DNA from: Bigelowiella natans CCMP2755
Lineage: Eukaryota > Protista > Cercozoa
Length of the DNA: 64,000 nucleotides
Direction of reading: 5' to 3'
NCBI GenBank assembly: GCA_000320545.1
Contig: ADNK01000053.1
Location: forward strand, 77,942-141,941
Shown: piece after piece, positions 2,301-51,986 of the stretch
Layout of the letters: each line of letters opens with the position of its first letter
How positions within the stretch are numbered: position 1 is the first letter of the stretch
Notes under the pieces: model-generated
What the model saw: the letters and a program-made list of their open reading frames with translations, nothing else
Databases searched by the model: none
What the model was told of the DNA's origin: nothing
Translations under genes and position numbers: made by a program

Positions 2301-3730
2301 ACTATATATAAATATGTAATATTACAATATTTACTTATTTATATGAGAGGCCTTGGGAGAGATGTGCAAAATATACTAATGATACAGGGCTAAACAAAAT
2401 CACATATCTAAGCTGAGAAGGAGAGGGGGAAGGGGGGCGAGAATGCGGCGGAAGAGAGAGAGAGAGAGAGAGAGAGGAATGGTTCCAATGAATAATTAAC
2501 ACTTTGCACAAAGTAGCAGCAGCACGACCAATGTAATAGTTCTTGCAGCACGAGGGAACATAGACACCACCATAGTTGTCGTTGGAGAAGAGGAGGAGGA
2601 GTAGGGAAGGGGGGGGAAGGTTGAACCTTGCTCATCTTCTGGATGTGGCTTCCATATTCCTTTGTCTTCTTTAGCACCTGTTAAGTAGAAACGACAGAGA
2701 GAGAAAGAGAGAGAGAGAGAGAGTATAGACGAAGGGCTTAGACGAAATAATATAGACAGAATATCTCGAGATGCCGATTGTTATTTCTATTCGCTCATCT
2801 CTCGCATCGACATCTTCATCACGGTCAACATGTCACGGAATGCTGCCTTATATTTTTTGAAAGCACCATCATGTGTACTACGTTCCCGACCTCGCGCGCC
2901 GTGATGAGGGCTCGAATGTTGCTGCCTTTGCAATGGTGAGAGAAAGGGATTATAAGCCCAGGGATATACTACTACTGTCACTGCCATCTTCCACTGATGT
3001 ATTATTACCAGCATAAGTGTGACTTTGAAGCACGGTACGACCTTCCTCTAAATGGCCAACAGGATGCAGATATTACCAACTACTTACATGCATACACACA
3101 TACTGATGTTCGGTGCTGAGAAAAGAATCACCTCGCAGCCTCCCCCCCCCCTCAAACACGAGGCATCCAGCGAGTGGGAAAACGCCACCGGCCACCTGGA
3201 AATCAGAGAGACATTACATAAGTCTTCATATCATCCTTCAAATGGATCAGGAGGAGGAGGACGTGGAGGCCGAGGAAGAAGAGGAAGAGAGAATGGGTAA
3301 AATGATTGAACCGAAAATCATCTATACATCTACATAGTAGTAATAATAAAACTGAAAAGATCACAGGGCTACTAGCTCCCAACCGCCTTGCCGAATGTCA
3401 CTGCATCAGGCCTTAAATCCCAGCTGTATAGAAGCGAGCGACCCATCAGATCATCACAGCAAAGAGGGGAAATGATACGTAGGAAGGGAGGGAGGGAGAG
3501 GTGGTAGGAGGAGGAGGAGGGAGGACAAGAAGAGAGATATCAGATTAGCTCTGATGGAGAGACTATAGATAGGAATGGGAATGAAGAATGAAAATAATAT
3601 ACCTTTTCGATAAGAACAAATCGCCCTCGCCATGTCGTGCTAACGATGTTAAATATTGCAACACATTCAACATACATGTTTTTATAGATTAGCTCTATTT
3701 CTTTCTCTCCCTTACACACACACGCGCGCG

Positions 3731-3786
<56 letters not shown>

Positions 3787-4682
3787 AGGAAAGAAACCTG
3801 TATATGCATACATAATTTGCAATATTGATGTGCTGAGAAAATGCTTATGACGTAGAAGATAAGAAAATATAACAATGGTAAACTCTATTTTATCATCACC
3901 TAATCCACACATAACTTCATCTGCCAACACCTGATAGATCATGCAGCAGGAGCAGGGCGAGGAAGGAAAAATAGGAGAAGAAGGGGAGGAGGAAGAGGGG
4001 GGTGAAGGAGCAGACGTTCTTTATAGTCATTGCCATATACACAGGCGTCAATTATCCTTGAAGCGAAAAGTGGTATTATTCTGTTGTTGCTGATCTTGCA
4101 TAAGTCCGCACAGATAGTATATATATATCTAGGGTGCCGCCATACCTTGATGCCTCTCTCCTTAGCAAGCCGAACATACTCTTTCAGCATCTCTTTGTCC
4201 CACGGCTGTGCTGCCTATTACGCGTGAAGAATCACCGAGAACGATGAATTATGAGAAAAAAAGTGAGGCGACATTGAACACGATTTGCTCCTTCATACAC
4301 AGCACGCATGTGTCCCTGAAAGGGGGGAGGGGGGGAGGGGATTATATGTAAAAGAGACACGGATCATGCAAAACAACCAAGGAAGATCCCGACTGCGGCT
4401 CGAACAAAATAACACCTGAAACAACAAAAAGGCATTGACAAGAAGGTGATGATTTTCGGCGTACTGAAAGCGTTGACCCGCCGTCTCATATATTCTCGTT
4501 GAATTATAACGTATATTGTAGCTCACACCCACCCAGCTCATCGGCTTCTCGGTTGAGAAAGTCGACGTATTCCTGCCTATAGAAGGGGAAGAAGAAGAAC
4601 ATGCTGAGGGAGAATGCAATGATGATGATGATGATGATCATGATGATGATCATGATCATGATCATGATGAAAGCAATCATAA

Positions 4683-4723
<41 letters not shown>

Positions 4724-6039
4724 TATAAGATTACTATCCCACAAATTCCATACGATTTACCTCATTCTTTGATGGAATTCATCGAGGGACTCTCCAGCTT
4801 CAATTCTTCGCTTATGATAGCTACGATATGACGACGAGGAGGGCAAAAGAGGACAGGGAGGAAGAAGGCTCAGTAAGCGATGCTGATGGTGACGATGCGT
4901 ACTGGAAATGGTGATGATGATTATCATGTGTTTGTGTTAGGGTCATAATGATGACGTGAAAGAGGCTGTTGTTGGTGATGAAGATGATGTGCTGGTATTA
5001 CGCTGGCATTGGATATGTTCGTTGCATCGGCTTTGCTCCGAGGGGCGACGCTACGTGCGACATAGCAATCAATCACAAATATAACGATTCATTGCACTCC
5101 ACACCCTAGTATATTTACCAGTTGTTGTGCAGATGCGTCTGTATTTATATGTATTTAATTACTTTCATGCAAACATTGTGTGAATATATATGGCCATTAT
5201 TTGGTGGCTGTGTCGCTGGGATGAAACTCCCCCCCCCTCCCCCCCTCTCTCCCTCCCTTACCTGAGCCGAATGAAGAAGATCCAGGCCCATGGTATGAGA
5301 ACTCACTTACAGCAACCTAATATCGAAGATGATGATGAAGGGGTGGGGCGGAGCAGAATAAGGTCTTGATATACATTAGATTTTACACCATTGTCTTCTC
5401 GTCGTCATCATCGTCATCATCATCGTCATCATCATCATCATCATCATCATTGACGGCACCTTCGTTCGTAACGAGCTGAAAATATCCTTCTGTTTCTCGT
5501 GGGGCGTCGTGTTCTCCTCTCTGCGCACAGGAGGATGGAAACGATGGTGAGTCAAAGAAAGAACGCTTTAAATCCACACATGTACAGCAGCAGAGCAGAA
5601 ACAACTGGAGAAAGTGGGAGAAAAAGGAGATGAAGTATATATGCGGAAAGCTACTTCTTGGAAAGTATATGTGTTAGTATATGAAGCAGCACATTGGATG
5701 TTGCAGCTGGAGCAGTAAATCGATGCCAGCGAGCACCTTGTTTTCGGTAGGGAGGAAAGGAGGAGGAAGGGGGGGAGGGAGAGAAGGTTGTATTTGATGA
5801 TTCTTCACTACGTGCATTTGTTCTTGCTAAAAGCTTTGGAAAGGCAGCAAAACGTTCACTCATCGCCATCGTTGCATCATCGTTGTATACGCATGATTGC
5901 ATTCTTCTAATGTGTATGCATTTGCTGTCACCGCACCGCGGAAGTGCCCTCCACCTGGAAAGGGAATAGTTGGACAAAGAAGAATGAGGCGAAGGGGATG
6001 AGATTATATAGAAGATCTCACTATGTCACTAAATTGAAG

Positions 6040-6080
<41 letters not shown>

Positions 6081-7379
6081 TAGCGCATGAAGTCTAGTCA
6101 TCCCACCTGAAGGCTAGCAAACCACTCCTCAGAAGCAGCCGCGAGATGGGAGGGGAGGGCGCTTTCTGATCCAACAAAGAAACGAGGACGTGAGCGTGTG
6201 CCATGTAGGCGGTAGCAGTATTTTAGTGTCTAAAGGCAGTCCTCTCTCTGTTTTCCTTAGTTTGTTTTTGAAATGCCCTTCTCTGCTGCGGATAAGAGCA
6301 GTTGCGCCTTTTGCATCCCCGCATAAACGTTTCAAGTAACAGTTACTAACACCATTGGCCGATGACACGCTACCTAAGGTACGGATGAACTCTGGGAGCG
6401 CCTGAGGGACCTTGTTTGATAATAATTGGTCTTAATTAATAAATGAGTAGCTGAGCGACAACGGATTTTTACATTCTCGTTGTGGTAGATAAAAGCGAAG
6501 CAATGATAGGAAAGGAGAGGAGAAGTACCCCGGCACTTGTGTGAATGGATAACGGGGCTGCATGATTGCCTTTATTCAGATTCATAAGTGCTTCCCTTTC
6601 AGTGAATGCATCGAAAGAAGGGGCAGTGAGAATAATAATGCGGTCGCAACAGTACTAATAGATGTGACACATAGTCTCTTGTAGTAGGAGAAATAGCGCA
6701 AGCAGCATATCCCTCCTCAGGTTCGTTATTTTCATTACCACTACAACTACTACTATTAGAAGTACTACTAGGTCAACGATATATCAACATCGAGACCTTG
6801 CTCCCCATCATTACCTTTCGTAGTCGAAGCCTGGTTGCAGAATCTCTGCCAGTCGGGGGCCTGATGGGTTATGAGTAATGATGGTGATAGGAGGGAGGAA
6901 GTAAGGTGCATGCTCAATATATGCGACGACAACAACAAAGATGTTCCGATTTCGAATCTCTCCATCCCCTCTTCTTTCCTGTGTAGCGGTTTCTATGTGT
7001 GTGTGTGTGTGTTGCGCGAGCGCGAGCATGTGTGCCAAACTCCTATCCGCAACTAACCCAACGCTTACCGGAGAAGCATTCGCTACACGCAGCACCGACA
7101 ACCATCATCTCCTCGGTGTCGTTTTCTTCCTAATTAAGACCAGCGGCGGCAGCGCGGTAAGGGAGCGGAGCAGAAATAGAAGCTGCATCGTTTGAAGATG
7201 ATTGAATTATACTCACGGCGGACTAACCTGCCGTATGTGAAACGGCCCCTTCTTCGACACCGTGACGGGAATGGGTGTGCCGACAGGGACACGGCCAGCG
7301 AAATGAGAGACCTAAGGGCGCGTTGTGATGATCGAATCATGATATGCAAATGCCTGGGAACTTAATGGTGCTACGTGGA

Positions 7380-7414
<35 letters not shown>

Positions 7415-7492
7415 GACCGAAAGCATGCGCTTGGAGAAGCAGCATCTCTGGCCGAGTGTCGATGCACATGCTGATCGAACCATCGCCCTCAT
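1120..7492 (-). CDS. Class-III PLP-dependent aminotransferase with probable mitochondrial presequence (multi-exon)
   Basis: Spliced exons give VAVSEFSYHGPG (~5260-5310), ILFEPQSGSS (~4380-4415), VLADEVMCGLARHG..WDLRPDAVTFGKAVAGGVFPLAGCL (~3930-3160; PLP Lys codon 3387-3389), QSHTYAG, SHGMGLMWG and WPYFVDMGVMVTPTYDI, ending ..GWKKSGQH* at 1120. First exon MRAMVRSACASTLGQRCCFSKRMLS is Arg-rich with no acidic residues. Confidence 0.88.
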
Positions 7493-7691
7493 CTCGCTGG
7501 AGGGCGGGTTTTGAGGTCGGCTTGCGTTACTGTGGGACGGATAGCCTCAGAGCACGTAATATCAGAAGAATGCGAAAACCGACCAGAATCTTACGAAAAG
7601 ACATGCAAATAATTCCATATTTTGGAGAATCGCATGTTCCGAGACTACCATTTTTGTTTTTGTTCTTGCGACAATGACATGACATTGTCGC

Positions 7692-8117
7692 AGGATAAAA
7701 TCAGCGCTATTTGTTTCCTTGCTCCTGCCCCTCATCGTATCTCAGGTTGGGAGCACTTCCTGCACCCTTGCAATCTGTAGTGGCACTCCACCGCTTTCTC
7801 GAAGTCAATTATGGATTTGTCTGTCTACCCCCTGGTAACTGGTGTGCATGAGGGAAGGAGAAGATAGTTTGTGTATGCGTTAATGTTTCTGATTGTGCTT
7901 TCTCCCCGCTGCGTGTGGCTTGACTGCTGGCGCTACTACTACTGCGATTTAAGCTATATCACTGTGGATTCTGGGCGGGACTGTGCTTCATAGTGTCCAC
8001 AATCACGGGGAATGTGAGCCAGGTGGACAAATTATGGAGCCTTACGCCGGCTCTATATGCCTGGCAAATTGTGTTCTCATCCGACACACTTCAGATGCGG
8101 TATTAGTCACACATCAT

Positions 8118-8157
<40 letters not shown>

Positions 8158-9931
8158 ACACGCTTTCAGTGACCTTTTGGAGCCATCGAAAAAATGAGAA
8201 ATGGCTTTCCACGCGCACTTATGAGTCCTTGCCTCGTCATGGCACTCAGGATGGTGCTAATGGCGGTCTTGGCGACTATTTGGGCTGCCAGACTAACGTA
8301 CAACTTTTCTCGTCGAGGTATGGTAAATAGATCTTTTGCAGGGAGTAGTAGTGATTTGATCGGAGAAGGAACATTGATGCATACGGACATATGTAGAATG
8401 GTATATTTTCAATTCTCGCTTCCCTCTTATGCAAATTCTAGAAATCACCGTCGCTTTTGCTCCTCACCCCCAATTCGTCGTGTCACAACCAAAGGAGGAT
8501 ATACCTGGCCGCCCTGGGAGGGGGAAGAAGATTATAGATGGCCCATTCTGCGAAAAACGAAGCCACTGAACAACCCGCTCGTTTGGATGGTAATAATGGG
8601 GTGTGGCATGGTTAGATAAATTAGCCAACAGTCTATATAGCAATGCAATGTTACGATAAGCATCACACCAGATATAGCAGTTTGTACCATAACTAGTATT
8701 CATCGTAATCTATCAATAAAATCGTCATTTCATTGCGAAGCATCCACCTGCCATCTACACAGGCCTTCAACCTCGGTTTCATCTCGATTTACCAGCACTT
8801 TCTTCTTCTCCTCATCGTGCTGCCTCAATTTATTGCGGCCTCGGCGCCAGGAAAGGACATGATAACGTACATTGCACTTATAGCACCACTCATATCGCTT
8901 TTGATGGAAGAAATGCGAGTCGGAGCTATTGTGTATGAATCCTGGTTGATTCGCATGTCGTCCCCTCTCTCCCTCTCTTTGTGCGTGTGTGTGTGTTCAA
9001 ACGATACCGATGAACGGAAAGGGGGGGGGGGGGAAGAACTTTATATAGTATCCGTTAATAGATACTGTCATCACTTTTGAAGACTAGCCTACTTTTACCC
9101 GAATGAATTCGATTCCTTGTTTCTATGTTGCTGCTGTCATCATCTGAAAAAACATTGGCGTGTCATCTATCAAGCACACTGGACCTCGTTCTTGCCTTGG
9201 CCTTTCTCCTACTTGTCTTGGTGGAGTACATCGGTACAGTTTATCAAGCAGCAGCCCCAACATCAACAACATTTGTGCGTGTGTCAATACAGGTTCGGGG
9301 TGAAGGCGTGAGAAAACGTGAATTGCTCATGCCGTTTAAACCTTTTTTATTCGAATATGATTCACGACTTTCTTCAAGGCCTTCATCCTTCTTCTATCTC
9401 TTTTACGTAACTTCTTCATTGAGCCCATGCTTTCGATCTCCCCCCCCCCCCCCTTGTCCGAACAGCGGATCAGCAACAGTACGACTTTCAAACGGAGAAG
9501 TACAGGCTCAAGGGCACAGGTCTCGCTCTCTACGGGTAGTATGCGTTATGCTGGAGTCTTGTGAGAAAAGCATGATGACGGCGGCTATTTTCGCAACTTG
9601 GGCGAACGAACGTGTATGATGACGACGACAGTTTTTCAAAACTTCGGAACGATTTGTTTGTTTTTCTCCTCGTTTCCCTGAAGCTTAATATCGGCATCTT
9701 GCCGTTGTATTTCATCATTTTGAGGATTTTGATTCGTTTGGATGATCAATGCTTTCTCCATCATCTATCATCGATTCATTCCTCAACGTCCTCCTCGTAA
9801 CATCTAATGCTGACATCTGCAATCTTTATCTCCCAGCGAGTATAAAGTAGGGTATCTTCGCACGGGCTTGTGGAGCATCTCGAGGTGGTTGGTGGTGTAG
9901 TATATTCACAACACGCAAACATGCATATACG

Positions 9932-9969
<38 letters not shown>

Positions 9970-10636
9970 TCACACCCTACGCATTTATAATTGCACAGTA
10001 ATACAATATATATATAACTAAGCGGTTCGTCTACACTTACGTTTGAGCCGCTCCCTCATCCCTCTCCTGACTTCATTTCACTCCATTATTCCTCGAGCAG
10101 ACATCCAAACTATTTCGCTGAGCAGTCCATCTGGTGGGGTTCATCACCATTTCCACGATACAAATAAATACAAACAGCCTTTAGCTTTCTATAGCTCTTT
10201 GTTGCCATATAAATAAATATATGCACATATATAATATTTATATGTGCAGCAAAGTTAAAAATTCCGTTCTTGAAGGCTTTCCTTTAAAAGTGGGGTGTAT
10301 GTGTGATATGTGTCTGTGTGTGTATCTTATTTCTCTTGCCGTGCATGATTGGATGAATGCTCACGTAGGGTCGTGTATTATCTCTTCTCTGGTGCGGCGG
10401 GAGCTGGTGAGTGAATGGCGCTTGTTTTCACATCAGTACCCTGTTCGAATAGATTATGCATATAGATTCATGATGGAGGAGGAGGAGGAGGAGGAGGAGG
10501 AGGAGGAGGAGGAGGAGGAGGAGAATAACATTTAATCTGTATTGATTGTGTCGTCGTTGTTGACTATCTTCGTCACCATTTGTCAGTCTTCTGCGCACCG
10601 ATTTACTCCTTCGTTTCATTTTCCCAATTTCTCTAG

Positions 10637-10668
<32 letters not shown>

Positions 10669-11167
10669 TATCATCATTATCACCTCTCTACATGGCTGCA
10701 ACGTTGGGTTTATTGCTGTTGCTATTGTTGCGTCGTCGTGAATTTGCAGGATGGCTCAACGCGTCTGTAATCGGCCCAGTACTCCTAATCCTTCTCTTCC
10801 AAGGATCGGTGTTTATACATAACATCTGACATAATTAATGACGATAATAATAAATCATGAGGCGGCTGTAGTAAGTTTACATGTATTTCATGTTTGTTTA
10901 TTCCCTTTGCATATACATGGCATATCTAAACATTATTTTGGTCAGTCTTCCTCACCAAATATTTCTTTTCTCTCCATCCCAAACGTGCTGCGCGTATAGG
11001 TGGCCTTCTCGGAGGGCATTTCCGCCGGAAAGTACCCTGAATACATTGAATATCAGCAGAAAGTGCCGATCTTCATCCCTACAAATCCAGCTCTTTATCG
11101 CTCCTTCTGGAATCCAACAGGCGATGACTACGCAACTGCCGCTGCGGCAGCAACAGAGATGAAATAG
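7692..11167 (+). CDS. DUF1295 / steroid 5-alpha-reductase-like multi-pass membrane protein (multi-exon; start codon not fixed)
   Basis: Exons read ITGNVSQVDKLWSLTPALYAW, WAARLTYNFSRRGGYTWPPWEGEEDYRW, AFNLGFISIYQHFLLLLI, ADQQQYDFQTEKY, GYLRTGLWSISRHPNYFAEQSIW, LLILLFQGS and FSEGISAGKYPEYIEYQQKVPIFIP. Stop TAG at 11165-11167. Confidence 0.88.
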
Positions 11168-11888
11168 TATCTCACCAGTCCATCTGAATATTCTGCTCCC
11201 CGAATGTTATGATTGCGCTCATAATGTGAGCATTGCAGTGACCATGCATGCTTGCTCTGTCTAGCTGTGTACGGCTACTTTGTGTTCAATAATGACAGTA
11301 TGGAGCATTGCAACGGGTGTCAAATGCTATGTAATATTACTTGAGCGAAATTGATGATGTTACGATACATTTTTACGACTGCGAGAAATGCACACACTCT
11401 GTGACCTAGCTGGCTATGCATGAATCGTATGGCCTATTTTAGTAATGTGTAGTAGACGTGGATTTTCATTTCTTTTTGGCTATAATGTGTACAGCAGATT
11501 TCTTGTACCTGTCAGTGCATTAAATGATGCATCCTACTAGCTGACAATTTTAATCATCTATATAAATGATGTCTTAAGCTAGCTTAGCATATGGTCGCAG
11601 CTTGACAGCGACACGCTAAAAGATGCACATAGTACTGCGGCTGCACCAGGGTCAACAGGCATGATGTAGTAATAATAGTTACGCTGCATGTATGGTCCAT
11701 CGTAGCATCGAACGCCCAGCGTAAAGTTAGCTAGTATGCTGATAGATAGAGGATTCATCGCAAAGAAATGTAGGTCTACAATGTGCTTTATTTCAGTGAC
11801 CCAAATTTGTTGAAGATCAGGCAGTTGTTGGTCGCACGAGATCGAACTCAATCGTGGCCGACACCGCATGAACGTCAAGCATTTACAA

Positions 11889-13336
11889 TTAGTTGCAGTC
11901 CTCAAACGAGTAGGTTCCGTCGAGGATTGTGATTGGCAGTTTATGCGTAAGCTTTGCACCGCAACTTGTCTTTCCAAGGACCTTAGCGCATCCATCTAGT
12001 GCGAGATTTATTTCGAGATTGCTAGCATTCCCCTAGAAAAAGGAACAGCGTGAATGTTGTGTTGAGGTGCACGTTAGATCTCGCACAGCATGATCTCCAG
12101 CATAACATGTGTAGTAATCATCAATGCCCCATCTTTGGTTAGTTACATCACTTTCAATTCTAGGTCAGCGTAAATGCCGATGTTGCCGATGACGGGCACT
12201 CCAATGGTGAGCCCAGGAATCGCGAATTGCTCAACCTCGCCAGATTTCACGCCTTCCAAAAATATTTATAATTTGTCATGCATTGTTAAAAGCAAGATGA
12301 TGGCAATTGATGACGATGACGGTTCTCAGAAAGCCACAAGGCAACTAAGGTGCTACACCAGAAAAGGCTTTTCCCCGATCATATCTAAAATTCCCTATCA
12401 CGTATCATTACAATCGCACCGAATGTCGAGTCGATTCCGAGCACCGTCTCCTTGATCTCAGCTGTGAGCTCTGCAGGGTCACCGCATGGCATAATCTCTG
12501 CAATTACCTGTAATCGAAAGGAATTGGATTGTAAATATGAAGCTGTGTTGTAGGAAGCCAGAGCGACCTCTACAGTGTCTTTTCCGAGCAAGCTGATGGA
12601 GCAATTAACGACTCCGCCTTTAGTCGAACTTACGCAGTTACATTCGCTTGGGAGATGTTTCGTCAGGTCGGAGCAACTTCGTTCATCGCACAGCAAGCAA
12701 GAAATGTCGCCATATTAAGAATTATATCAGATATAACCATGCCAATGCAAACAGATGACGGAAGAAAATCGAAAATGGAAGCTAGGATTAGACTTACAAA
12801 TCGCTGGAATCGCCAACGTCTTGGCGTTGGTCAATGATTCGAACAGCGTCCATGTTCGTCATCAGGGGCACCGATACCACGTTTTCGAACCTGTGATTAT
12901 TATACGTGAATGCTGAGTACGTGTTCTGTAACACCAGACAACACTAATATTTACGGCAAGTTGTAAACCCACACCCCCCATGCCATGCTCCCTTTATCTA
13001 ACGAGAAAAACCAGCCTTACTCGCAAGAGTTGCCGGTAACATTGCAGGTGAAATGGGAAGGGCAGGAAAATCGAGCGTCCTCACACACCGCAGCCTTTGG
13101 AGCGGGCGCACAACCGTGCAAGAGACCAGCACCTGCTCATCAAGACGCCAAGTTGAACGACTATAAATGTTCAAATGTACAGGAAACTTTGGACCTTCTG
13201 CGCTAGAGACGCATGTTTGAGAGGCTAGGCAACCATTACCGTTGCCACAGTCCTTCACAGGGTTGTTAACACTGGCGACAGCATTGATGAAGAACGCCAC
13301 CAAGATACAGGGAAGTACTGCTGCTGCAGACTTCAT
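11889..13336 (-). CDS. Secreted cysteine-rich protein: signal peptide + atypical granulin-like domain + C-terminal Cys-containing domain
   Basis: MKSAAAVLPCILVAFFINAVA signal peptide. Removing intron 13133-13194 gives CGNGNGCLASQTCVSSAEGAGLLHGCAPAPKAAVCEDARFSCPSHFTCNVTGNSC. Later exons read FCSDLTKHLPSECNC..VNCSI..IMPCGDPAEL..FAIPGLTIGVPVIG..LDGCAKVLGKTSCGAKLTHKLPITILDGTYSFEDCN*. Confidence 0.75.
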
Positions 13337-13559
13337 TGGAATTTCATGTCGCGTGCTTGCACACTTTCTCACGGGGGTTTACCTACCTAGTTTGCGCTCT
13401 TCGGGATTGACGCACACTTGTAAATGCTCTTGATTTCGTCGTGCTTCTGTTATCCTCGGGAATGTTCTAGGAACTGATAATTCGGGATGAATACAGGGAA
13501 TTCTTTTACTGCGACAACAAATAATTCCAGGATGCTGGATCTCTTCCTCAAATCCCAAC

Positions 13560-13849
13560 ATGAAGAAAGCTTTCAGGGGCGTGTCTGCGGGCGCGCACGG
13601 TCGGCAACGCGGCATGAATAGACCATACTATGACAAAGGATGCACGCTTCTTGGAGGAAATAGACAGGTTATAAGATGTAAGACGTGCCTGAGGAAGGCC
13701 GGGAAGACGAAGCAAACTGTGGAATGGAATCTCAAGCACCACTCGGACGAGAAGAGGAAGAAAAAGGTTCCAACGCATTTTCATTCTCATCATATTACAA
13801 TTTTTTCCCAACAAAATATCAAACGAATAAATGTCCGCGTTTGCATGCA

Positions 13850-13917
<68 letters not shown>

Positions 13918-14385
13918 TGTGTGTGTCGTGATAAAAAGGCAATTGATAATCCGGAGGTGAATCTAGAAGACTATGACGTCTTTCGTGATTACAAGGTGTT
14001 CAAACAGCGGGCTGTAAAATTGCAGACAGTGAAAGTAAAGCAAAGAAAGCATTTAAATAGTCAGAGCGATCGTACTTTCGTGTCTAAAAGAGGAAAGTTT
14101 ATCCAAAAGCGTAACTTTTCTCATTGCGACGAAAATCAAACCCGAAGGGCAGCAGCTCAATTACGACGCGATTCCATACGCTTTTTTAGAGGGGAGCTTA
14201 AAGAGTGTGCTGAAGCTCATGGCGTGAATGCTTCGACAAATTGGAAGAAGAGCTTCCAAAAACAGAAGCAGAAATATTTCGCAGCCATTTTACACAAGCT
14301 AAATAAAAGAGATAGACTACAGAGGCGAGCAGAGAGAAACAAGGAAAATTTTTACGAAATGAATCATTTGTTCATCTTTGAATGA
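13560..14385 (+). CDS. Lys/Arg-rich hypothetical protein, two exons, with a CxxC..HH motif
   Basis: Exon 1 MKKAFRG..IRCKTCLRK..WNLKHHSDEKRKKK ends at a GT donor (~13768). The intron carries (CT)n(GT)n. Exon 2 reads AIDNPEVNLEDYD..EMNHLFIFE* in the same open frame as ORF 13831-14385. Confidence 0.55.
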
Positions 14386-15809
14386 TACTTCACCTAGATT
14401 TGATAGCTGCAACATAGAATTGGTGAGTCTTGCTGAAAACTGCTGTCTACATGTACGTGTCGCATGTGTTCAGATGTGTATAGCTAATGTCTGTTTATGA
14501 CAAACAACAATGATACACATAATTATGCATCTACATATGTACATAGATGCATAACTGTTCCGATTAGTGGAAATAACAATGACAATTGATGTGCGGTTTT
14601 GCTTCGTCGCAATTGCAGGACTTCTAGACTTGGCTACTAACTGTAGATAAAATAAGAGATTATAGCTTGCTTGCCACTATTGCATAGTATGTAGCACAGC
14701 TGGAGTGTCATCTCCATGAGCGTGTAGTACACACGTGCTGGCATAGCACTGACTATAGCTGACCACACTAGCACACTGTTCTAGTGATACCTACCCATCT
14801 ACAGCATATTAGCATGGTGGCTTGTATGGATGTAGCTGATGTGCTCAAAAAGTTACTGTTCATCGTCTGATACAAATGCTAGAATGCATCGTTGTGGAAT
14901 GTGCTTTTAGGAGAACGCAACGACCAATTTGTCCATCTAGCCATGTGAAGAAAATGGTCTATGTGTGCTAGACAATACAAAGTATGTGTAGTGTGACAAT
15001 GCTGCATGCATATTTTGCCGTGTAGAATGTTGCGTGATATCCTTCTGTTGTCCAGTCTAGCAGTGCCCTCGCACTTTGTGAGAGAAGTGGAAACGACCAT
15101 AAACTGGGCGCCGCTCGGGAGGGTTGGAGACCATGGACGTAACCCGAGATTGCAAGTTCAACACCGAAACCGCAGACTAGCAGACAACATCCAAAACCCC
15201 ACCACATCAACGAGCTTCAGGGCGACCAGCACCGTTCTCGAATGAATATTGCGTCAGAGTACGATGCTCAGCGTTGTCTCTGCACATGGAACCACTGTCT
15301 TAGGGGTTGCTATTTTATATGAGCGACAATCCAAAATCCTGCGTTTTTCCCTTGAAAATAGCCCTACATGTGCTGCTCCTCTATTTGTTTTTAAGGTGAT
15401 ATTATCTAGATCTGCGACATTCATCACTGAAACGCGTGCCCTGCATGTAGATCTAAAATAGGTTTTCAATTACCCACTTTTTTCACCAATCGGATGGTTT
15501 TGTTGGGTTTTTTTCTTAATATCTCCTTGACGCAGCATTGAAATCCCAGTGAAATCCCTTTGAAATCTGTGCAAATCCTGTCTTGTACGACTGGTTTACT
15601 CGTAGACCTACTATCTCTGGGAACTGCAGTTACTCGCACGTTACATCTAATTATAGGTCTTTTATGAGAATGGTAAAACAGAGTCTATACTCAGACCAAC
15701 TCAACTCAGACTCCTGCGAAGACGGATTTAAGGAGGAGGCGGAGGATACTGAATGTAGTAGCAGCACCTTACTGCTTCACCTTTCTTGAACAGCGGACAG
15801 TGACCGACG

Positions 15810-19776: not shown

Positions 19777-22700
19777 ATAGATATATAACATTATGTTCAT
19801 ATCTCCTGTGTTTGTGTAGACAACGGGGTCAATTAGAGTGATATCGGCCAGTCTGCCTTCAGCAGCTCCGTCCAACACTCCTACCTATGTACCATCAACT
19901 TCGCCATTGCCAGCGACAAATTCCCCATCCTCTGGGTCTCCTTCAACTCATCCATCAACTTCGCCATTGCCAGCGACAAATTCCCCATCCTCTGGGTCTC
20001 CTTCAACTCATCCTTCAACTTCGCCATTGCCAGCGACAAATTCCCCATCCTCTGGGTCTCCTTCAACTCATCCTTCAACTTCGCCATTGCCAGCGACAAA
20101 TTCCCCATCCTCTGGGTCTCCTTCAACTCATCCTTCAACTTCGCCATTGCCAGCGACAAATTCCCCATCCTCTGGATCTCCTTCAACTCATCCATCAACT
20201 TCGCCATTGCCTGCGACCAGTGCCCCACAAACATATTCCCCAACCTCAGCGACTCCGTTGATGACTTACTCGATTTCAACATATCAGCCAACTACGTGCA
20301 CACCCACCACAATATCACCTTCCCTGTCTCCATCTTCCTTTCGACCCACAAACTCGCCCAGTACACATCCGCACACTTTGTCACCCTCCTTCTCTCCATC
20401 ATCCTCACAACCCACAAAATCTCCACGCACGAAGTCGCCTTCCTCCTCGTCTCCATCAACTCCAGGACCGACCCACTCTCCTAGTAAACATCCGCACACT
20501 AAGTCGCCCACCCCCCTCTCCTCCACTTCTCCTTCCACTGTCGCCGCGTTGAAAACATTCAATCCCAGTGCTTCTCCCACCGCCCGGCGACCCGAGGCAA
20601 CAGGGGCAAGGCTCTCAGGCTCACTCACAAAGATCATTGTCACTTTCAGCATAGGTACCAACCAGCCTTCACGGGCCGACCTTGGCTGCAGCTACTTGCT
20701 CACCTCGAGCTCCGTCGCGCAATTCGGTGTAGATCCAGTTTGCTACTGGTCACAGCCGAGTCACCTGGTTATAAAACTCGGTAAAGACTTCACTGTGGAA
20801 GTGGATGCAGCTATCGGGCTGAAACCAGGCGTTATTCGAAACCCCTCGGCCACCTCGGCAGCTGCAGAACAAGCGCAACTTGTCGTGCGGCCTCCTCCAA
20901 ATCCTACTGTTCCCGTTGCGGTAGTGTCTGGGAAGAGTGAGTACGGAAACTGCGACAATGCTGTCGACATCAGCGCCAGCGAATCGCAAGGGAGGGGAGG
21001 CAAACCTTTTCGCTACCAATGGACCTACATGGATCAAACTGGGGGGGTGGGGAATATCCACATCCAGACGATTTTGAACCAGACGAGATCCAGGCTTGTC
21101 ATCGATACGCAAAGCTTCACCGTCGGGTCTCATATGGTTTCCCTGAGAGTGACAAATTGGATCGGGATGACATCGGCAGCCGCTAATTTTAGCTTTAGGA
21201 TTATATCTGACCGCATACCAGTCATCATCATCCCGGGCTCAATCGACATCTCTCACAGCCGCACTGAGCGCCTGATCATTCGAACCCAGATCATATCCGC
21301 TTTGAGCTGTGGGAATGATGGAGCTGCCTCTACTACTACTACTACTACTTCTGGCAGTGGTGGTAGTACTACGAATGCACTTCTTAACACAAACGGGACA
21401 AACACAGGGGTCTGGAGTCAGCTGCTACCGACGTCATCGTTTCCTCCGGAGCTCGCCTCTCGAGCGAGTACGATTACTAGTGATGTCATTACCATCCCCC
21501 GACCGATTTCGACAAAGCTGGAGATCCCACCAGACAAGTTAACGATGGGCAAAACATATGCATTCCAGCTGACTGCCACCACACGAGAGAATTCTGTGAT
21601 TGTCGGATCAGAGGCTCGACAGGTCTTCTTTGTAGAAGTTCAGGTCGAAGATGTCGTTGCCGTACTGCCCGGTGGTAACACTCGCCAGCTGCCGGTGTTG
21701 GCCACAACGCACATAGCAAGATTTGATGCTAAGGCATCGTATGACCCTGCAGGCACTTCAGTGCCTTTGGTGTATTCGTGGAGTCTGAGGGAGACGGCAA
21801 CTAACAGCACGATCACAACTCCGCCGCCCTCATCCAGCAAGCCTTGGCTTCTTGAGATTGACACACAAATACTTGTTGCGAATGGTACATATGTGCTGGA
21901 GTTAACGGTAGAAGGAAGAACCATTGGCGGTATGCGTCGTTTTGGATCGCGCAAGCAGACGATAACAACAACCGCTGTCAACATCCCGGATATCCAGGTC
22001 TCAATGCGGGTCTTTCCAGCCCCAGGAACGCGGAGGGAGCAGGCTCGATTAGCAGAGATCGAGCTGCGCGCAAATCCGGACGACAAGATTTCTTTGGTGA
22101 GCAACACGCCACGAGATGAAAGAAGATCTTACAGCTTTGCGTGGAGGTGCTTGACCAACAACTTCGACTTCAACGACAGGAGTAAGCTCAGGGCTGGCTC
22201 GCAAGGGAGCAGCCTCGTAATCTCTCCCAACAGTCTGCAAGGTGGTGTTGGCTATACTTTTGAGGCGACTATCACAGAATTAAGTACCGGCTACAGTTCT
22301 ACCAACGAGATTTCGTTCACAGTCAATGCACCCCCTAGCCTAGGTTCGTGCTACTCCTCCCCATCCTTTGGCTTGGCACTGAGCACGACGTTTGTGCTGT
22401 CATGTAGTGGGTGGGAAGATACTGACACGCCGCTGCTCTATTCGTTCTATAGCTTCAACGGACGTCAGTTCACGGCGCTCACTCGCCGTCGAATGGAGCC
22501 TTCCTTCTCCACCCTGCTGCCGCCCCCGCCCGAGTTGATCGCAGGCACAAGCAGCAACAACGCGTCTGCGCTGGTGCGGGTGTCTATCATTGATGCGCTA
22601 GGGGCAAAACAGCAATCCCGGATAACTGTGTGGATGGGTCTGCCCGACAGTGATGATGTCAGCGTCGACTCCATTTCCGAATCGATCACTGCACGCCTAG

Positions 22701-25531
22701 CGGAGGGGGATGCAGACTCCGCAGGTATCTTGATATTAAGCACAGCTTCCTACCTGCGGACTGGTTCTGAGAGCAACGTCACTGAAAGAAGACTGCAGAG
22801 AAGCAGGCTTCTCACTGACCTTGGAACGCTGGCAACGTTGGCTTCTGACACGGAGGAGGACTCGATCGAGACACCGGTCGCCATCCTGGAGGATCTCACC
22901 ATTGTGGACAACGCTGCGGATTTTCCAGTCGAGCAGCAAACGATAGCTCTTGCGCTTGTGGAAAACATAACTGATAGTGACCTCAACTCATTCTCGGACA
23001 CTGTAGTTGCGTCATCAATCGGCACGCTGAGCAATATCCTCAGCCTGGCGCAGGCTGGCAAGGCCTCTGACAGGATGAGCACCGGAAGTTCGGTACTTAA
23101 CATTTTAGAGAAGCTTTCCACCGGTTCCACGAGCGCAAATCTAGTCGAGGGGGAGGAGGCGCTGGAGTATACATCTGGTGAGATTACTCTCGCGTCGCAG
23201 CTCGTCAGTCCTACCAGCATAGGAGAAACTGGGTCAATGTTCTCCTCCTCGAATGGCTATGGACTAAGTGTTTCTGCGGGGACGTCTCTCCCCTTAAACG
23301 TGTCTGGAGGATCCTTAAACGTGATGATCAGTACCACGAGCAGTGCACCTATTTACCCTTCCAACGATTCTCGTTCTACGGCTGGCTCCGTCACTGTTGT
23401 GCTTGGGCAAGATGGCAAGGGACTCGACATAAACGGCATTGACCCTCCTCTTCAAATCACTATCCCCGCACCAACCTTGGGGAACTCTTCCTCCTCGCTG
23501 TCACCATCATCGGTGATCTCACCGAAATGCACATTTTGGAACACAACGCTGCGTGAATACTCCGATGCTGGCCTGACATTTGTCAGTAATAGTACAACAA
23601 CCAATGGTACAAGAGTCCTTGTCTGCAATACTACGCACCTCACCACATTCCACGGTGAGACTGAGACCTCCGTCAACGTTAATGAAATCTCGGAAGACGA
23701 TCTTACTGAACCAGAGGAAATATTTTCCCCGATATCAAACCCTGTATTCGCCTTCTGTTTCTCGTTGCTTCTCAGCCTCCCTCTCGCTGCCTTCGTCGCA
23801 TATCGCAACGACAGTAGGAAGCAAACCGAGGAGGCGGTCAAATATTTCTGGAAGCGCATCCGCTTCAACACAGAATCGACGGTGCGGAGGGAGCGCAGCT
23901 GGGCGCTCTTTCGCAAGCATTTCCACTGGCAAATGAAGCGCGGACACGTGTGGCTTGCGGTTTTGATCCACCCCAACGGCGATTTCCTCGATGGGATCAA
24001 GCGCACAGTGATGCTCTACACTCTGCTCTTCAACTCTTTTACGGTGTGCACTTTGCTTGTCGGCCAACGCCAGCAGGTTCCCTTTCTAAGCTCCATGCTT
24101 TCAGCTTCCCTCGTCGCCATGGTCCTGGCCTTCCCTATCCCTTATTTTACTACGATGTTCCTCAAGCGAAAGATACCCTCCACCATGGCAATAGATCTCT
24201 CCACATTGGTCGCCCGCCAGATTATCCTGGTGAAGTTCCTGCTCTTTTTGTTCACGGACATCGATTTAGGCATGCTCGGTGGGGGGGGGGACGCAGAGGC
24301 TGCGGGTGGAGAGGCGGGGGATATACGAGGAGACATGAAATTAGCCGGAGATGCTGGCGGCGGAGGTGGTCTTGCAAAGGGCTTGGATCTCGGGGATAGG
24401 GCAGATATTCGTGTCGCAGGTGACGCTGGAGGGGGCGGGGGGAGAGCGCGTGGCTTTTCCGTGGCAGCTGGGGCTGTGGTAGGATCGACGTGCTGCGGGA
24501 CGTTTGTCTGGAAAACCAAACAGGCCGATAACCTTACATACACGGTCAAAGACGTAGTGACGCTTAGTTTCTGCGTGCTCGTGATGGTTGGATGCACGTT
24601 TATCAACTCAGTGCTGGCTGCACGCCTCGGCCTCGACTCGTTCGAAGCTATTCTGGTAGCGCTGATCTCCTTCTGCGAGGACTTCTTCGTAAGGATCAAC
24701 GCCATCTTTTGGGTGCAGATGATTTTCTTCAGCCCATTGTGTGCCTTCTGCTGCTGCTGCTGCTCCTCCTGGCAAGCATCCATTAACAAGCGAGATTCTG
24801 TGGAACTACAGATGGCCAGCACTATGATCGCAGTCGGCAACAACTGGGTACCCGGCAAAGAAGTTATATTCGAGGATTATAAAAGTCCCGCTCTCGGGAT
24901 CTCATATCACAACTGCATGGTTACGGAGGTGAAGCCTGGGAGTGAAGCGGAGAGCGAAGGCGTTCAGATTGGGTGGCAGATTGGGGAGATATGCGGTCTG
25001 GAGACGCATAATGATGCCGAAATCGACAAAGAACTAAAACAGCTCGAGCGGCGTTGGAAACAGAATCGTAGTCCTTTCAGTGTGAAATTCACGCACCCTT
25101 CTGTGAAGCACTTGAACCCTGGCCCACTCTCCATGGCCTCCCGGGAGGCCCGGAACGAAATTTCACGAAGTATCCGGACCTTCTCCGATAGTAGTACTCG
25201 CAGTCTGTCTGGGGGGACTAGCAAAACATTTTCGCGTATAGGCTTCTCGAAGATGACTGCAAGCAGTATTTCAGTAGGCTCAAGTATGTCAACGCCTAGG
25301 GCAGCTTCAAGTATATCAACGCCTAGGATATCTTCAGCTATATCAACGCCTAGGGACCAACCAAAACGTCAGCATCGTAAGTTTGCCAGCGTTTTGTCAA
25401 GAATTGATGATGGCGACGAGGGGGGCACCAAAGCTGAGGACATCTCTCTTGACCCCTCCACGCCCCAAAGTGAAGCTAGTTCTGACCGAAAGTCTTTCGT
25501 GGATAGAAATGCGTCGAAACTGTCGATTTGA
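15810..25531 (+). CDS. Polycystin-1-like receptor: signal peptide, NHL-repeat propeller, P/S/T mucin stalk, PKD/REJ, GPS/GAIN, multiple TMs, cytoplasmic PDZ
   Basis: Signal peptide MLSKAARHYLLVLALATLQPLSFA. Short exons carry NHL-like motifs (ADGTVEN/ATFQIPQGMAAD, LYICDAGGNNLRK, VYFTDTGTVRYV, IDGSG/TRASFGSPAGI). The terminal exon 19820-25531 contains REJ motifs (FDAKASYDP, VNAPPSLGSC..P..G....T.F..SC.GWEDTDTPLLYSF), GPS (CTFWN..CNTTHLTTF), hydrophobic segments and PDZ-like VTEVKPGSEAESEGVQIGWQIGEICG. Confidence 0.85.
19892..20218 (+). repeat. Coding 60-bp tandem repeat, about 5.4 near-identical copies (PSTSPLPATNSPSSGSPSTH)
   Basis: The unit ccatcaacttcgccattgccagcgacaaattccccatcctctgggtctccttcaactcat recurs in register on consecutive 60-nt lines. 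Confidence 0.97.
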
Positions 25532-50819: not shown

Positions 50820-51986
50820 ACACACACACACACGCACACGCACACACACACACACACCATTATACGGAATGTCACAGTCTCTACTTAAGAAGAGTTAAGA
50901 ATGCAACTGCGGCTATACCCTCGCTTCCTGGCCTCTTCCAGCGTGCGGTTCATGTAAGCTTGGACGCCCGGATATTGACGGAAGTACCGGGATATCATGC
51001 CGCGAGCCTGGTCGTAGGAATGGGAGGTGGCTCGTTAGAGAAGAAGAGAAAGAACAGAATGTTGTGCTGCTGCTGCTGCTGCTGCTGCTGTCGCTTAGAT
51101 TACATGTACGTTACATGTATGTCAAGATGTTCATTATGATGACGACGATGACTACGTACCTCAGGTTCCTTGACACCCAGTTGTGCTGCCAAGCCGAATC
51201 TACTCGCAACGACGACCCACCGACATAAGATGTCACACACATACGCACGCACGCACGCACGCACGCACGCACGTATATGCATATTTATTTATTCATTTGT
51301 TTATGTTTTCACACGAATTTCAATCTACATTCGTCTTAAAAAAATTATCGGTATGAATGTGTGTTTCATAGACATCTCGTGAGATCGATTTAATTTTGTG
51401 TTGGGAAGTGGGATCCACTTGCAACTTATTACGAGGACATTCCGTAGATCAGCCCGAAGTTTATTGTCTTCGCTCTTCGACGCATTTCCGCCGTCACAGC
51501 TGCCTCCGATACACCGAACATCTTTGAATTGCAACTTCTTTTGTGAGCGTATGTGCATGTGCATGTGTGTGTGTGTATGCGTATGTGCGTGCGTGTTATT
51601 CTCATATAAATATCCCTTCTGCTTTGTGTCTTTGGATATCACCAAATGCCACAAAATATGGGCTCTCCGAGTAAACGCGCGCGCGTGCACACACACATAC
51701 ACACACCTGTGATGCCGTCGCTTTGTGGACCTGCAATGACGTAAAGGGAAAAGGGGGGGAGGGAAAAAAAGAGCAATGACAAGAGTACAATAATGATGAG
51801 CTGTTGCTTTTCTAAACAATCTGTTGGTGTTTGGAAGAGTTTTGCGACGCACATCTTTGCCTTCACGAAACGCCTCCACGAGCGACTTGTCGCGGGAGAA
51901 ATTTGCCATTATCCTTAGCTCTATCTGTGGATCAGAGACGGGAATAGGATGAGGGAAGCACAAGTAGGAGGAGATATGATGGAAAT

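Follow-up and report, generated by a model that had tools for sequence, protein, structure and literature searches.

An eight-cysteine granulin-type module in a predicted secreted two-domain protein of Bigelowiella natans and other protists

In the nuclear genome of Bigelowiella natans, we describe a single-copy gene of seven exons that very probably encodes a secreted protein of two domains: a true granulin homologue with eight cysteines, whose central rungs would be packed instead of bridged, followed by a C-terminal domain (hereafter, the C-domain). The gene lies on the minus strand of a stretch of 64,000 nucleotides from contig ADNK01000053.1, called the window here. As judged from sequence, the module is a natural stripped-down granulin variant, and it belongs to a protist family that had not been described before. 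Granulin modules attract study on three counts: as growth factors, in connection with frontotemporal dementia, and as peptide scaffolds for wound healing. The family bears on an open question, namely the number of disulfides, out of six, that the hairpin stack requires, as its members, spread across distant protists, would have the outer four bridges only, with each central bridge replaced by a fixed residue pair; this extends the known case of ten-cysteine modules. The eight-cysteine ladder may offer a ready template for simpler granulin scaffolds. In addition, clear granulin modules are now placed in Rhizaria and dinoflagellates, and a new cysteine-rich C-terminal domain without a family assignment is defined.

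To begin with the homology of the module, we compared exon 2 alone (37 aa) with the Pfam Granulin profile PF00396 and found a match to profile positions 10-42 at 33.9 bits (E=3.6e-8), above the cut-off of 20.9. The same region was recovered by a six-frame PF00396 search of the 91-Mb genome (E=2.1e-5, 31.7 bits), and the match is far beyond chance. When exon 2 was compared with all PDB sequences, the best four matches were human granulin-2, granulin A and granulin 5, and zebrafish granulin AaE. Exon 2 and human granulin A (2jye) aligned gaplessly over 33 residues, an alignment that paired G-C-A-P with G-C-C-P, A-V-C-E-D with V-C-C-E-D, and F-S-C-P with H-C-C-P, followed by F-T-C and the final C-E. 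The initial annotation had proposed that granulin spacing is retained. We observed that this is so for every spacing except that between C3 and C5, which is 12 residues in the module and 9 in canonical granulin. Exon 1 alone matched nothing in Pfam or among the PDB sequences, and so the assignment of the C4 position rests on spacing and on the alignment of full-length homologues.

Read across both exons, the module is C-x5-C-x5-C-V...C-A-P-x6-V-C-x-D-x3-S-C-P-x4-C-x6-C. It has 8 cysteines instead of the 12 of the pattern C-C-CC-CC-CC-CC-C-C, with V, A, V, and S at positions C4, C6, C7, and C9, respectively; the V at C4 is read from exon 1, and the other three residues come from the 2jye alignment. 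The bridges of granulin are 1-3, 2-5, 4-7, 6-9, 8-11, and 10-12 (PMC4527844 S2 Text, citing Hrabal 1996 and Tolkatchev). Because the four substitutions fall on both partners of 4-7 and of 6-9, the missing cysteines are exactly the two central pairs, as first proposed from the window and now supported by the 2jye and family alignments together with the published connectivity. Bridges 4-7 and 6-9 are impossible, since their cysteines are absent. We infer that the remaining eight cysteines retain their canonical pairing, with 1-3 and 2-5 in the upper two hairpins, and with 8-11 and 10-12 in the lower two. The central rungs would be replaced by packing, one by a pair that is beta-branched or hydrophobic (V with I/V), the other by a small pair (A/S with S), such that the hairpin stack would persist without a covalent link between the halves. 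The second hairpin, which is longer and variable in length (12 to 19 or more residues versus 9), might then become free to vary. The picture of two independently stapled halves, put forward in the initial annotation, would follow as a logical consequence of canonical pairing.

The module spans positions 13023 to 13249 and is interrupted by intron 1 (13133-13194), a 62-nt, phase 1, GT..AG intron. The first cysteine codon lies at 13249-13247 and the last at 13025-13023, in agreement with the module boundaries proposed earlier. Translation of exon 1 (13195-13336) gave a hydrophobic N-terminus (a putative signal peptide of approximately residues 1-23) and then C-x5-C-x5-C-V-S-S-A-E, that is, C1, C2, C3, and the V at the C4 position; the start codon and this arrangement agree with the alignment of family N-termini. 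From 13132, the frame resumes with G-A-G-L-L-H-G-C-A-P ... N-S-C-E in exon 2 (13021-13132), which holds the C-terminal two-thirds of the module from C5 to C12 (C5-A-P..V-C8-E-D..S-C10-P..C11..C12). We enumerated in-frame GT..AG pairs over exons 1 and 2 by script and translated the combinations. Only the donor at 13194 with an acceptor at 13133 or 13136 retained C1-C3 with an intron of plausible size (62 or 59 nt). The tandem acceptor at 13136 lies 3 nt upstream of 13133, in frame, and its use would insert one Ala; the 62-nt form leaves a C3-C5 spacing of 12 residues, which most homologues share. In-frame introns of 23-29 nt and donors within exon 1 were ruled out, as they either broke the family spacing or deleted C2 and C3. 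The transcripts of two relatives, P0019 from Mataza sp. D1 and P0032 from Polarella glacialis, run unbroken from C3 through G-A-G to C5 with exactly 12 residues between the two cysteines. Since these spliced mRNAs cross the junction with the same spacing, we take intron 1 to be removed as originally modelled.

An in-frame TAA (13019-13017) directly follows C12-E, and the initial annotation had accordingly ended the protein there as a single domain of ~85 aa. That reading did not hold. The TAA sits within GA|GTAAGG, a good splice donor, and falls inside intron 2 (12891-13020; 130 nt), and the gene as modelled gives a product of 262 aa that includes a second, larger domain. We did consider a two-exon, ~85-aa secreted granulin-like peptide that ends at this TAA, with the downstream exons part of another gene or of a dead one, or with the short form arising as an isoform that retains intron 2. 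The position of the TAA directly behind the module is in keeping with such a peptide, and an intron-retaining isoform is conceivable, as B. natans features in the alternative-splicing literature. However, a strong GTAAGG donor overlaps the TAA, five further exons on that strand close a frame of 262 codons (equal to the 262 aa of the homologues P0023 and P0035, and near the 263 aa of P0032), and these exons have neither a start codon nor a signal peptide of their own. Furthermore, the C-domain stands behind the module in every full-length relative. We therefore regard the short peptide as very unlikely and favor the two-domain protein.

The complete gene model runs from the first in-frame ATG at 13336 to 11889 on the minus strand and comprises 7 exons, which total 789 nt and encode 262 codons plus TAA in frame. 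The five exons downstream of exon 2 were found by tblastn with relatives, including P0023. Exon 3 (12798-12890), located with P0023, encodes a linker with a (V/I)-x-P-L-M-x-N motif that is common to the family. Exon 4 (12568-12676) begins the C-domain with a helix, an L-P-S-x-C-x-C motif, and 4 conserved cysteines. Exon 5 (12420-12507) holds a conserved P-C-x-x-P-A strand region, and exon 6 (12152-12252) a conserved I-P-G-L ... I-G motif. Lastly, exon 7 (11889-12032) encodes G-N...L-D-x-C...C-G-x-K-L...L-P...F-x-x-C and the stop codon TAA (11891-11889). The six introns measure 62, 130, 121, 60, 167, and 119 nt, and all six are GT-AG. The second short one among them, intron 4 (12508-12567; 60 nt), when removed, brings back the 9-residue spacing of the family. 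The least certain junction is that between exons 5 and 6, where the donor G|GTGCGA is weak and the product is one residue short of the relatives. Exon-by-exon alignment of the model to the family holds, and the splice model is a prediction from homology and closure of the frame.

The window has a GC content of ~45% and is eukaryotic DNA. The published B. natans assembly comprises 91.4 Mbp in 3,736 contigs at 45% GC, with 7.8 introns per gene and a mean intron length of 184 bp (PMC12730881), and the intron sizes of 60-167 nt in our model are compatible with that mean. The gene is single-copy, as we found no paralogues of exon 1, exon 2, or the C-domain in the genome; a C-domain profile search of the genome returned this locus only (exon 7, E=6.6e-13; exon 4, E=7.7e-5). 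Upstream, we noted a four-codon open reading frame, ATG AAA TTC CAA TGA (13347-13333, minus strand), whose stop codon overlaps the main start codon. A long (CT)n and then (GT)n microsatellite (13840-13935) lies ~500 bp upstream of the start codon.

A HMMER search with exon 2 against 1.84 billion representatives returned canonical multi-module progranulins together with small proteins at 46-67% identity. We observed that these small relatives share the cysteine losses: cysteine was absent at C6, C7, and C9 in 16 of 16, and at C4 in all 13 that could be scored because they include the N-terminal half. The residues at these positions are also restricted, with Ser at C9 in every relative, Ala or Ser at C6, Ile or Val at C7 (once Thr and once Arg), and Val at C4 (once Ala and once Met). 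None of the canonical granulin matches had a C-terminal half of the eight-cysteine type. The relatives derive from the rhizarian Mataza sp. D1, from the dinoflagellate Polarella glacialis (both its genome and a transcript), and from environmental assemblies, Tara-type metatranscriptomes among them, and the eight-cysteine pattern that had been suggested as a query for protist sequences was recovered in transcripts of both Mataza sp. D1 and P. glacialis. The count of at least 16 relatives and their taxonomic range are lower bounds. On these alignments, the loss of four cysteines is a fixed state of the whole family and not peculiar to the B. natans gene.

The relatives resemble the B. natans protein in other respects as well. 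Full-length members are 258-263 aa long, with one of 324 aa, and all have the conserved C-domain behind the module. By inspection, residues 1-23 form a hydrophobic N-terminus in the B. natans protein, as they do in every full-length relative, and most family members have an N-x-T sequon in the C11-C12 interval. The C3-C5 hairpin has 12 residues in most relatives, 17-19 in some, and far longer in P0016. The literature on granulins with Bigelowiella or dinoflagellates yielded no description of the family.

The P. glacialis orthologue (CAJNNW010006875.1, gene 3001-14561) spans 11.5 kb; one of its introns lies within a few residues of the position of B. natans intron 1 (after C3-V-S-S), and another lies between C-A-P-A-V and N-A-T-I-C, near the intron that separates the N-half and C-half in animal granulin genes. 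P0036 (278 aa), from JGI metagenome sample 3300059473, is encoded without introns on a 2849-nt contig and is rich in Asn, Ile, and Phe; it has the same eight-cysteine module and C-domain. BFVD and a viral-contig scan gave no confirmation of a viral link for P0036.

We then turned to the predicted structure. The folded sequence was that of the homologue P0019, modelled with AlphaFold2 from a 12-sequence family alignment (pLDDT 77, pTM 0.67). Residues 16-75 of the model form successive short hairpins. Compared with 48,161 PDB representatives, P0019 matched zebrafish granulin AaE (6cku) best, with Z 5.9 and 2.1 Å over 56 of 56 residues at 30% identity, a comparison in which the model is a prediction for a homologue and AlphaFold had been trained on granulins. 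Foldseek with the full P0019 model returned nothing from the PDB at E<=0.001. The module of P0019 is predicted to retain one continuous hairpin stack, and the structural check proposed at the outset, as carried out on this homologue, points to granulin.

These results bear on whether the module might instead have a different small cysteine-rich fold (EGF-like, lustrin-type, or knottin) whose likeness to the granulin motif is accidental. EGF-like and lustrin profiles gave nothing in the window exons. Some homologues do show sub-threshold matches to EGF_Mua-3 (E ~0.01, 16 bits, cut-off 27) and Lustrin_cystein (E 0.0015-0.16), with scores in the homologues of 12.7-19.2 bits versus a cut-off of 27. 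However, all of these matches fall under the cut-off and involve the N-terminal hairpin only, whereas the Granulin profile exceeds its cut-off for the window sequence and for 8 of the 9 homologues scanned (22.4-34.5 bits; profile positions 1-42 in the full-length ones), with P0019 the member under it (18.5 bits versus 20.9). The non-cysteine landmarks G-C-x-P, A-x-C-x-D, and C-P-x4-C are kept, and the best structural match of the P0019 model is a granulin. A chance resemblance is hardly credible on this evidence. The proposed granulin homology was instead borne out by the Pfam score, by the PDB granulins as top sequence matches, and by the structural match of the homologue model.

Another possibility is that the module derives from granulin, but that its eight cysteines have re-paired, for example by newly bridging the two halves or by adopting an ICK-like pattern within one half, and that it does not consist of two independent halves. 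In granulin-like peptides, the real connectivity can differ from that of AlphaFold or otherwise predicted (PMC11035057), and conotoxins of the mini-granulin fold, for which AlphaFold gave the granulin pattern, have ICK connectivity (PMC11035057; PMC10133702). Re-pairing was also considered by Palfree et al. for other cysteine-deficient modules (PMC4527844). Against this, the losses are two complete canonical pairs, such that every remaining cysteine retains its canonical partner; the spacing around the retained cysteines is canonical; and the predicted model superposes on a 12-cysteine granulin over the whole module at 2.1 Å. Overall, we consider re-pairing unlikely and retain the canonical outer bridges as the preferred reading.

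Compared with canonical 12-cysteine granulins (PF00396; carp granulin-1, human granulin A 2JYE, and zebrafish AaE 6CKU), the module preserves the order and spacing of C1, C2, C3, C5, C8, C10, C11, and C12, the same non-cysteine landmarks, and the predicted four-hairpin stack, and with its putative signal peptide, as judged by inspection, it would likewise be secreted. It differs in its C3-C5 hairpin, which is 3 or more residues longer and variable within the family. The domain context differs too: B. natans has one module, N-terminal to an unrelated domain, whereas progranulins have tandem modules and plants have a module behind a papain-like protease.

A closer precedent is the common ten-cysteine module without C4-C7, which stands first among the full modules of GrnA-type progranulins, tetrapod granulin G being an example (PMC4527844 S2 Text). 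That module also lost a complete canonical pair (C4 and C7) while the rest of the ladder was kept, and so provides a precedent for pairwise loss. However, it keeps C6 and C9, whereas the B. natans module also lacks rung 6-9 and would have no covalent link between its halves. With C6 and C9 replaced in addition to C4 and C7, the B. natans module falls outside the ten-cysteine variant, in which only C4 and C7 are replaced. Other known variants are shark and sea-anemone modules without C-terminal cysteines, and lamprey and flatworm modules without the first CC (Palfree, Bennett, Bateman, PMC4527844); the eight-cysteine form is not in the variant table of that paper.

Smaller relatives in structure are also informative. 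Paragranulin, truncated Ov-GRN peptides, the conotoxins MiXXVIIA, Vc7.2, and TxVIIB, and the C-terminal domain of alphaD-conotoxin demonstrate that a two-hairpin sub-stack with 2-3 disulfides is able to fold alone, and each half of the eight-cysteine module would need to fold in the manner of these mini-granulin sub-stacks. The half-modules and mini-granulins are, however, single halves of ~25-30 residues, some of which have ICK connectivity and lack demonstrable sequence homology, whereas B. natans has both halves within one full-length homologous module.

The B. natans genome also holds other granulin-type exons. At least 4 loci reached the Pfam cut-off or exceeded it (21.3-28.9 bits), and a further one, L006, was just below it at 20.1. 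Along with L003 and L006, these loci include L002 (C2912:16426-16506), L004 (C3115:25726-25809), and L005 (C3123:88689-88763). Since L002, L004, and L005 show canonical CC pairs (e.g., V-C-C-P...C-C-P-S), B. natans has modules of the ordinary type too. Bikonts other than plants were stated in 2015 to be without easily identifiable granulin modules (PMC4527844), and the B. natans loci, as read from their sequences, appear at odds with that statement.

Behind the module lies the beta-rich C-domain of ~165 aa with eight conserved cysteines, all eight of which are present in the window. We found no Pfam match to it even at E<=10. Modelled on its own, the C-domain (pLDDT 86) was predicted to form one short helix followed by approximately ten long antiparallel strands, and Foldseek returned nothing from the PDB at E<=0.001. 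In a VIA-align comparison with the PDB, three actinoporins (FraC, bryoporin, and Fav) ranked first, with Z 4.5-5.2 over ~90-100 residues, barely over unrelated matches. As modelled, the C-domain resembles actinoporins in its beta-sandwich, which is similar in size, and in its short helix at the N-terminus, and differs in that its helix carries conserved cysteines. We take the actinoporin ranking as a lead and not as evidence of membership, since even the best Z scores (4.8-5.2) are not above background, the identity is 3-10%, and there was no sequence or Pfam match. Two leads from an ESM Atlas feature search, a Nucleocytoviricota cluster, which came nearest (0.94), and DUF4773 (0.81), were set aside, as neither BFVD, the viral-contig scan, nor Pfam confirmed them. 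P0038, an environmental protein of 180 aa (NCBI/ENA), consists of a signal peptide and the C-domain alone, without the granulin-type module. Because P0038 carries the C-domain by itself, we regard the C-domain as an independent module and, lacking a Pfam family, as a candidate new domain family.

By analogy with granulin modules elsewhere, the granulin-type module would most likely act as a compact extracellular binding or stabilizing head, and the C-domain would be the working part, possibly one that binds a surface or membrane. With low confidence, we thus picture a secreted protein whose four-disulfide head serves in binding or stabilization and whose C-terminal beta-sandwich is the effector. 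A bolder version is that the gene is the founding member of a group in which two mini-stacks of two disulfides, linked by nothing but backbone and side-chain packing, make up a hinged head with a free second hairpin, and that this head targets a membrane-binding or membrane-perforating, actinoporin-like C-domain, the whole being secreted by marine protists for attack, defence, or adhesion; we think this version improbable.

Elsewhere in the window, an uninterrupted 1897-aa open reading frame on the plus strand (19838-25531) carries a REJ domain (PF02010, E=2.3e-46) and is polycystin-like; the GC content of the stretch that holds it is raised (52-53% versus ~45%). On the minus strand, an open reading frame at 51325-51963 showed a sub-threshold match to DNA polymerase family A (30.2 bits versus a cut-off of 34.3) and probably represents a single exon within a larger gene.
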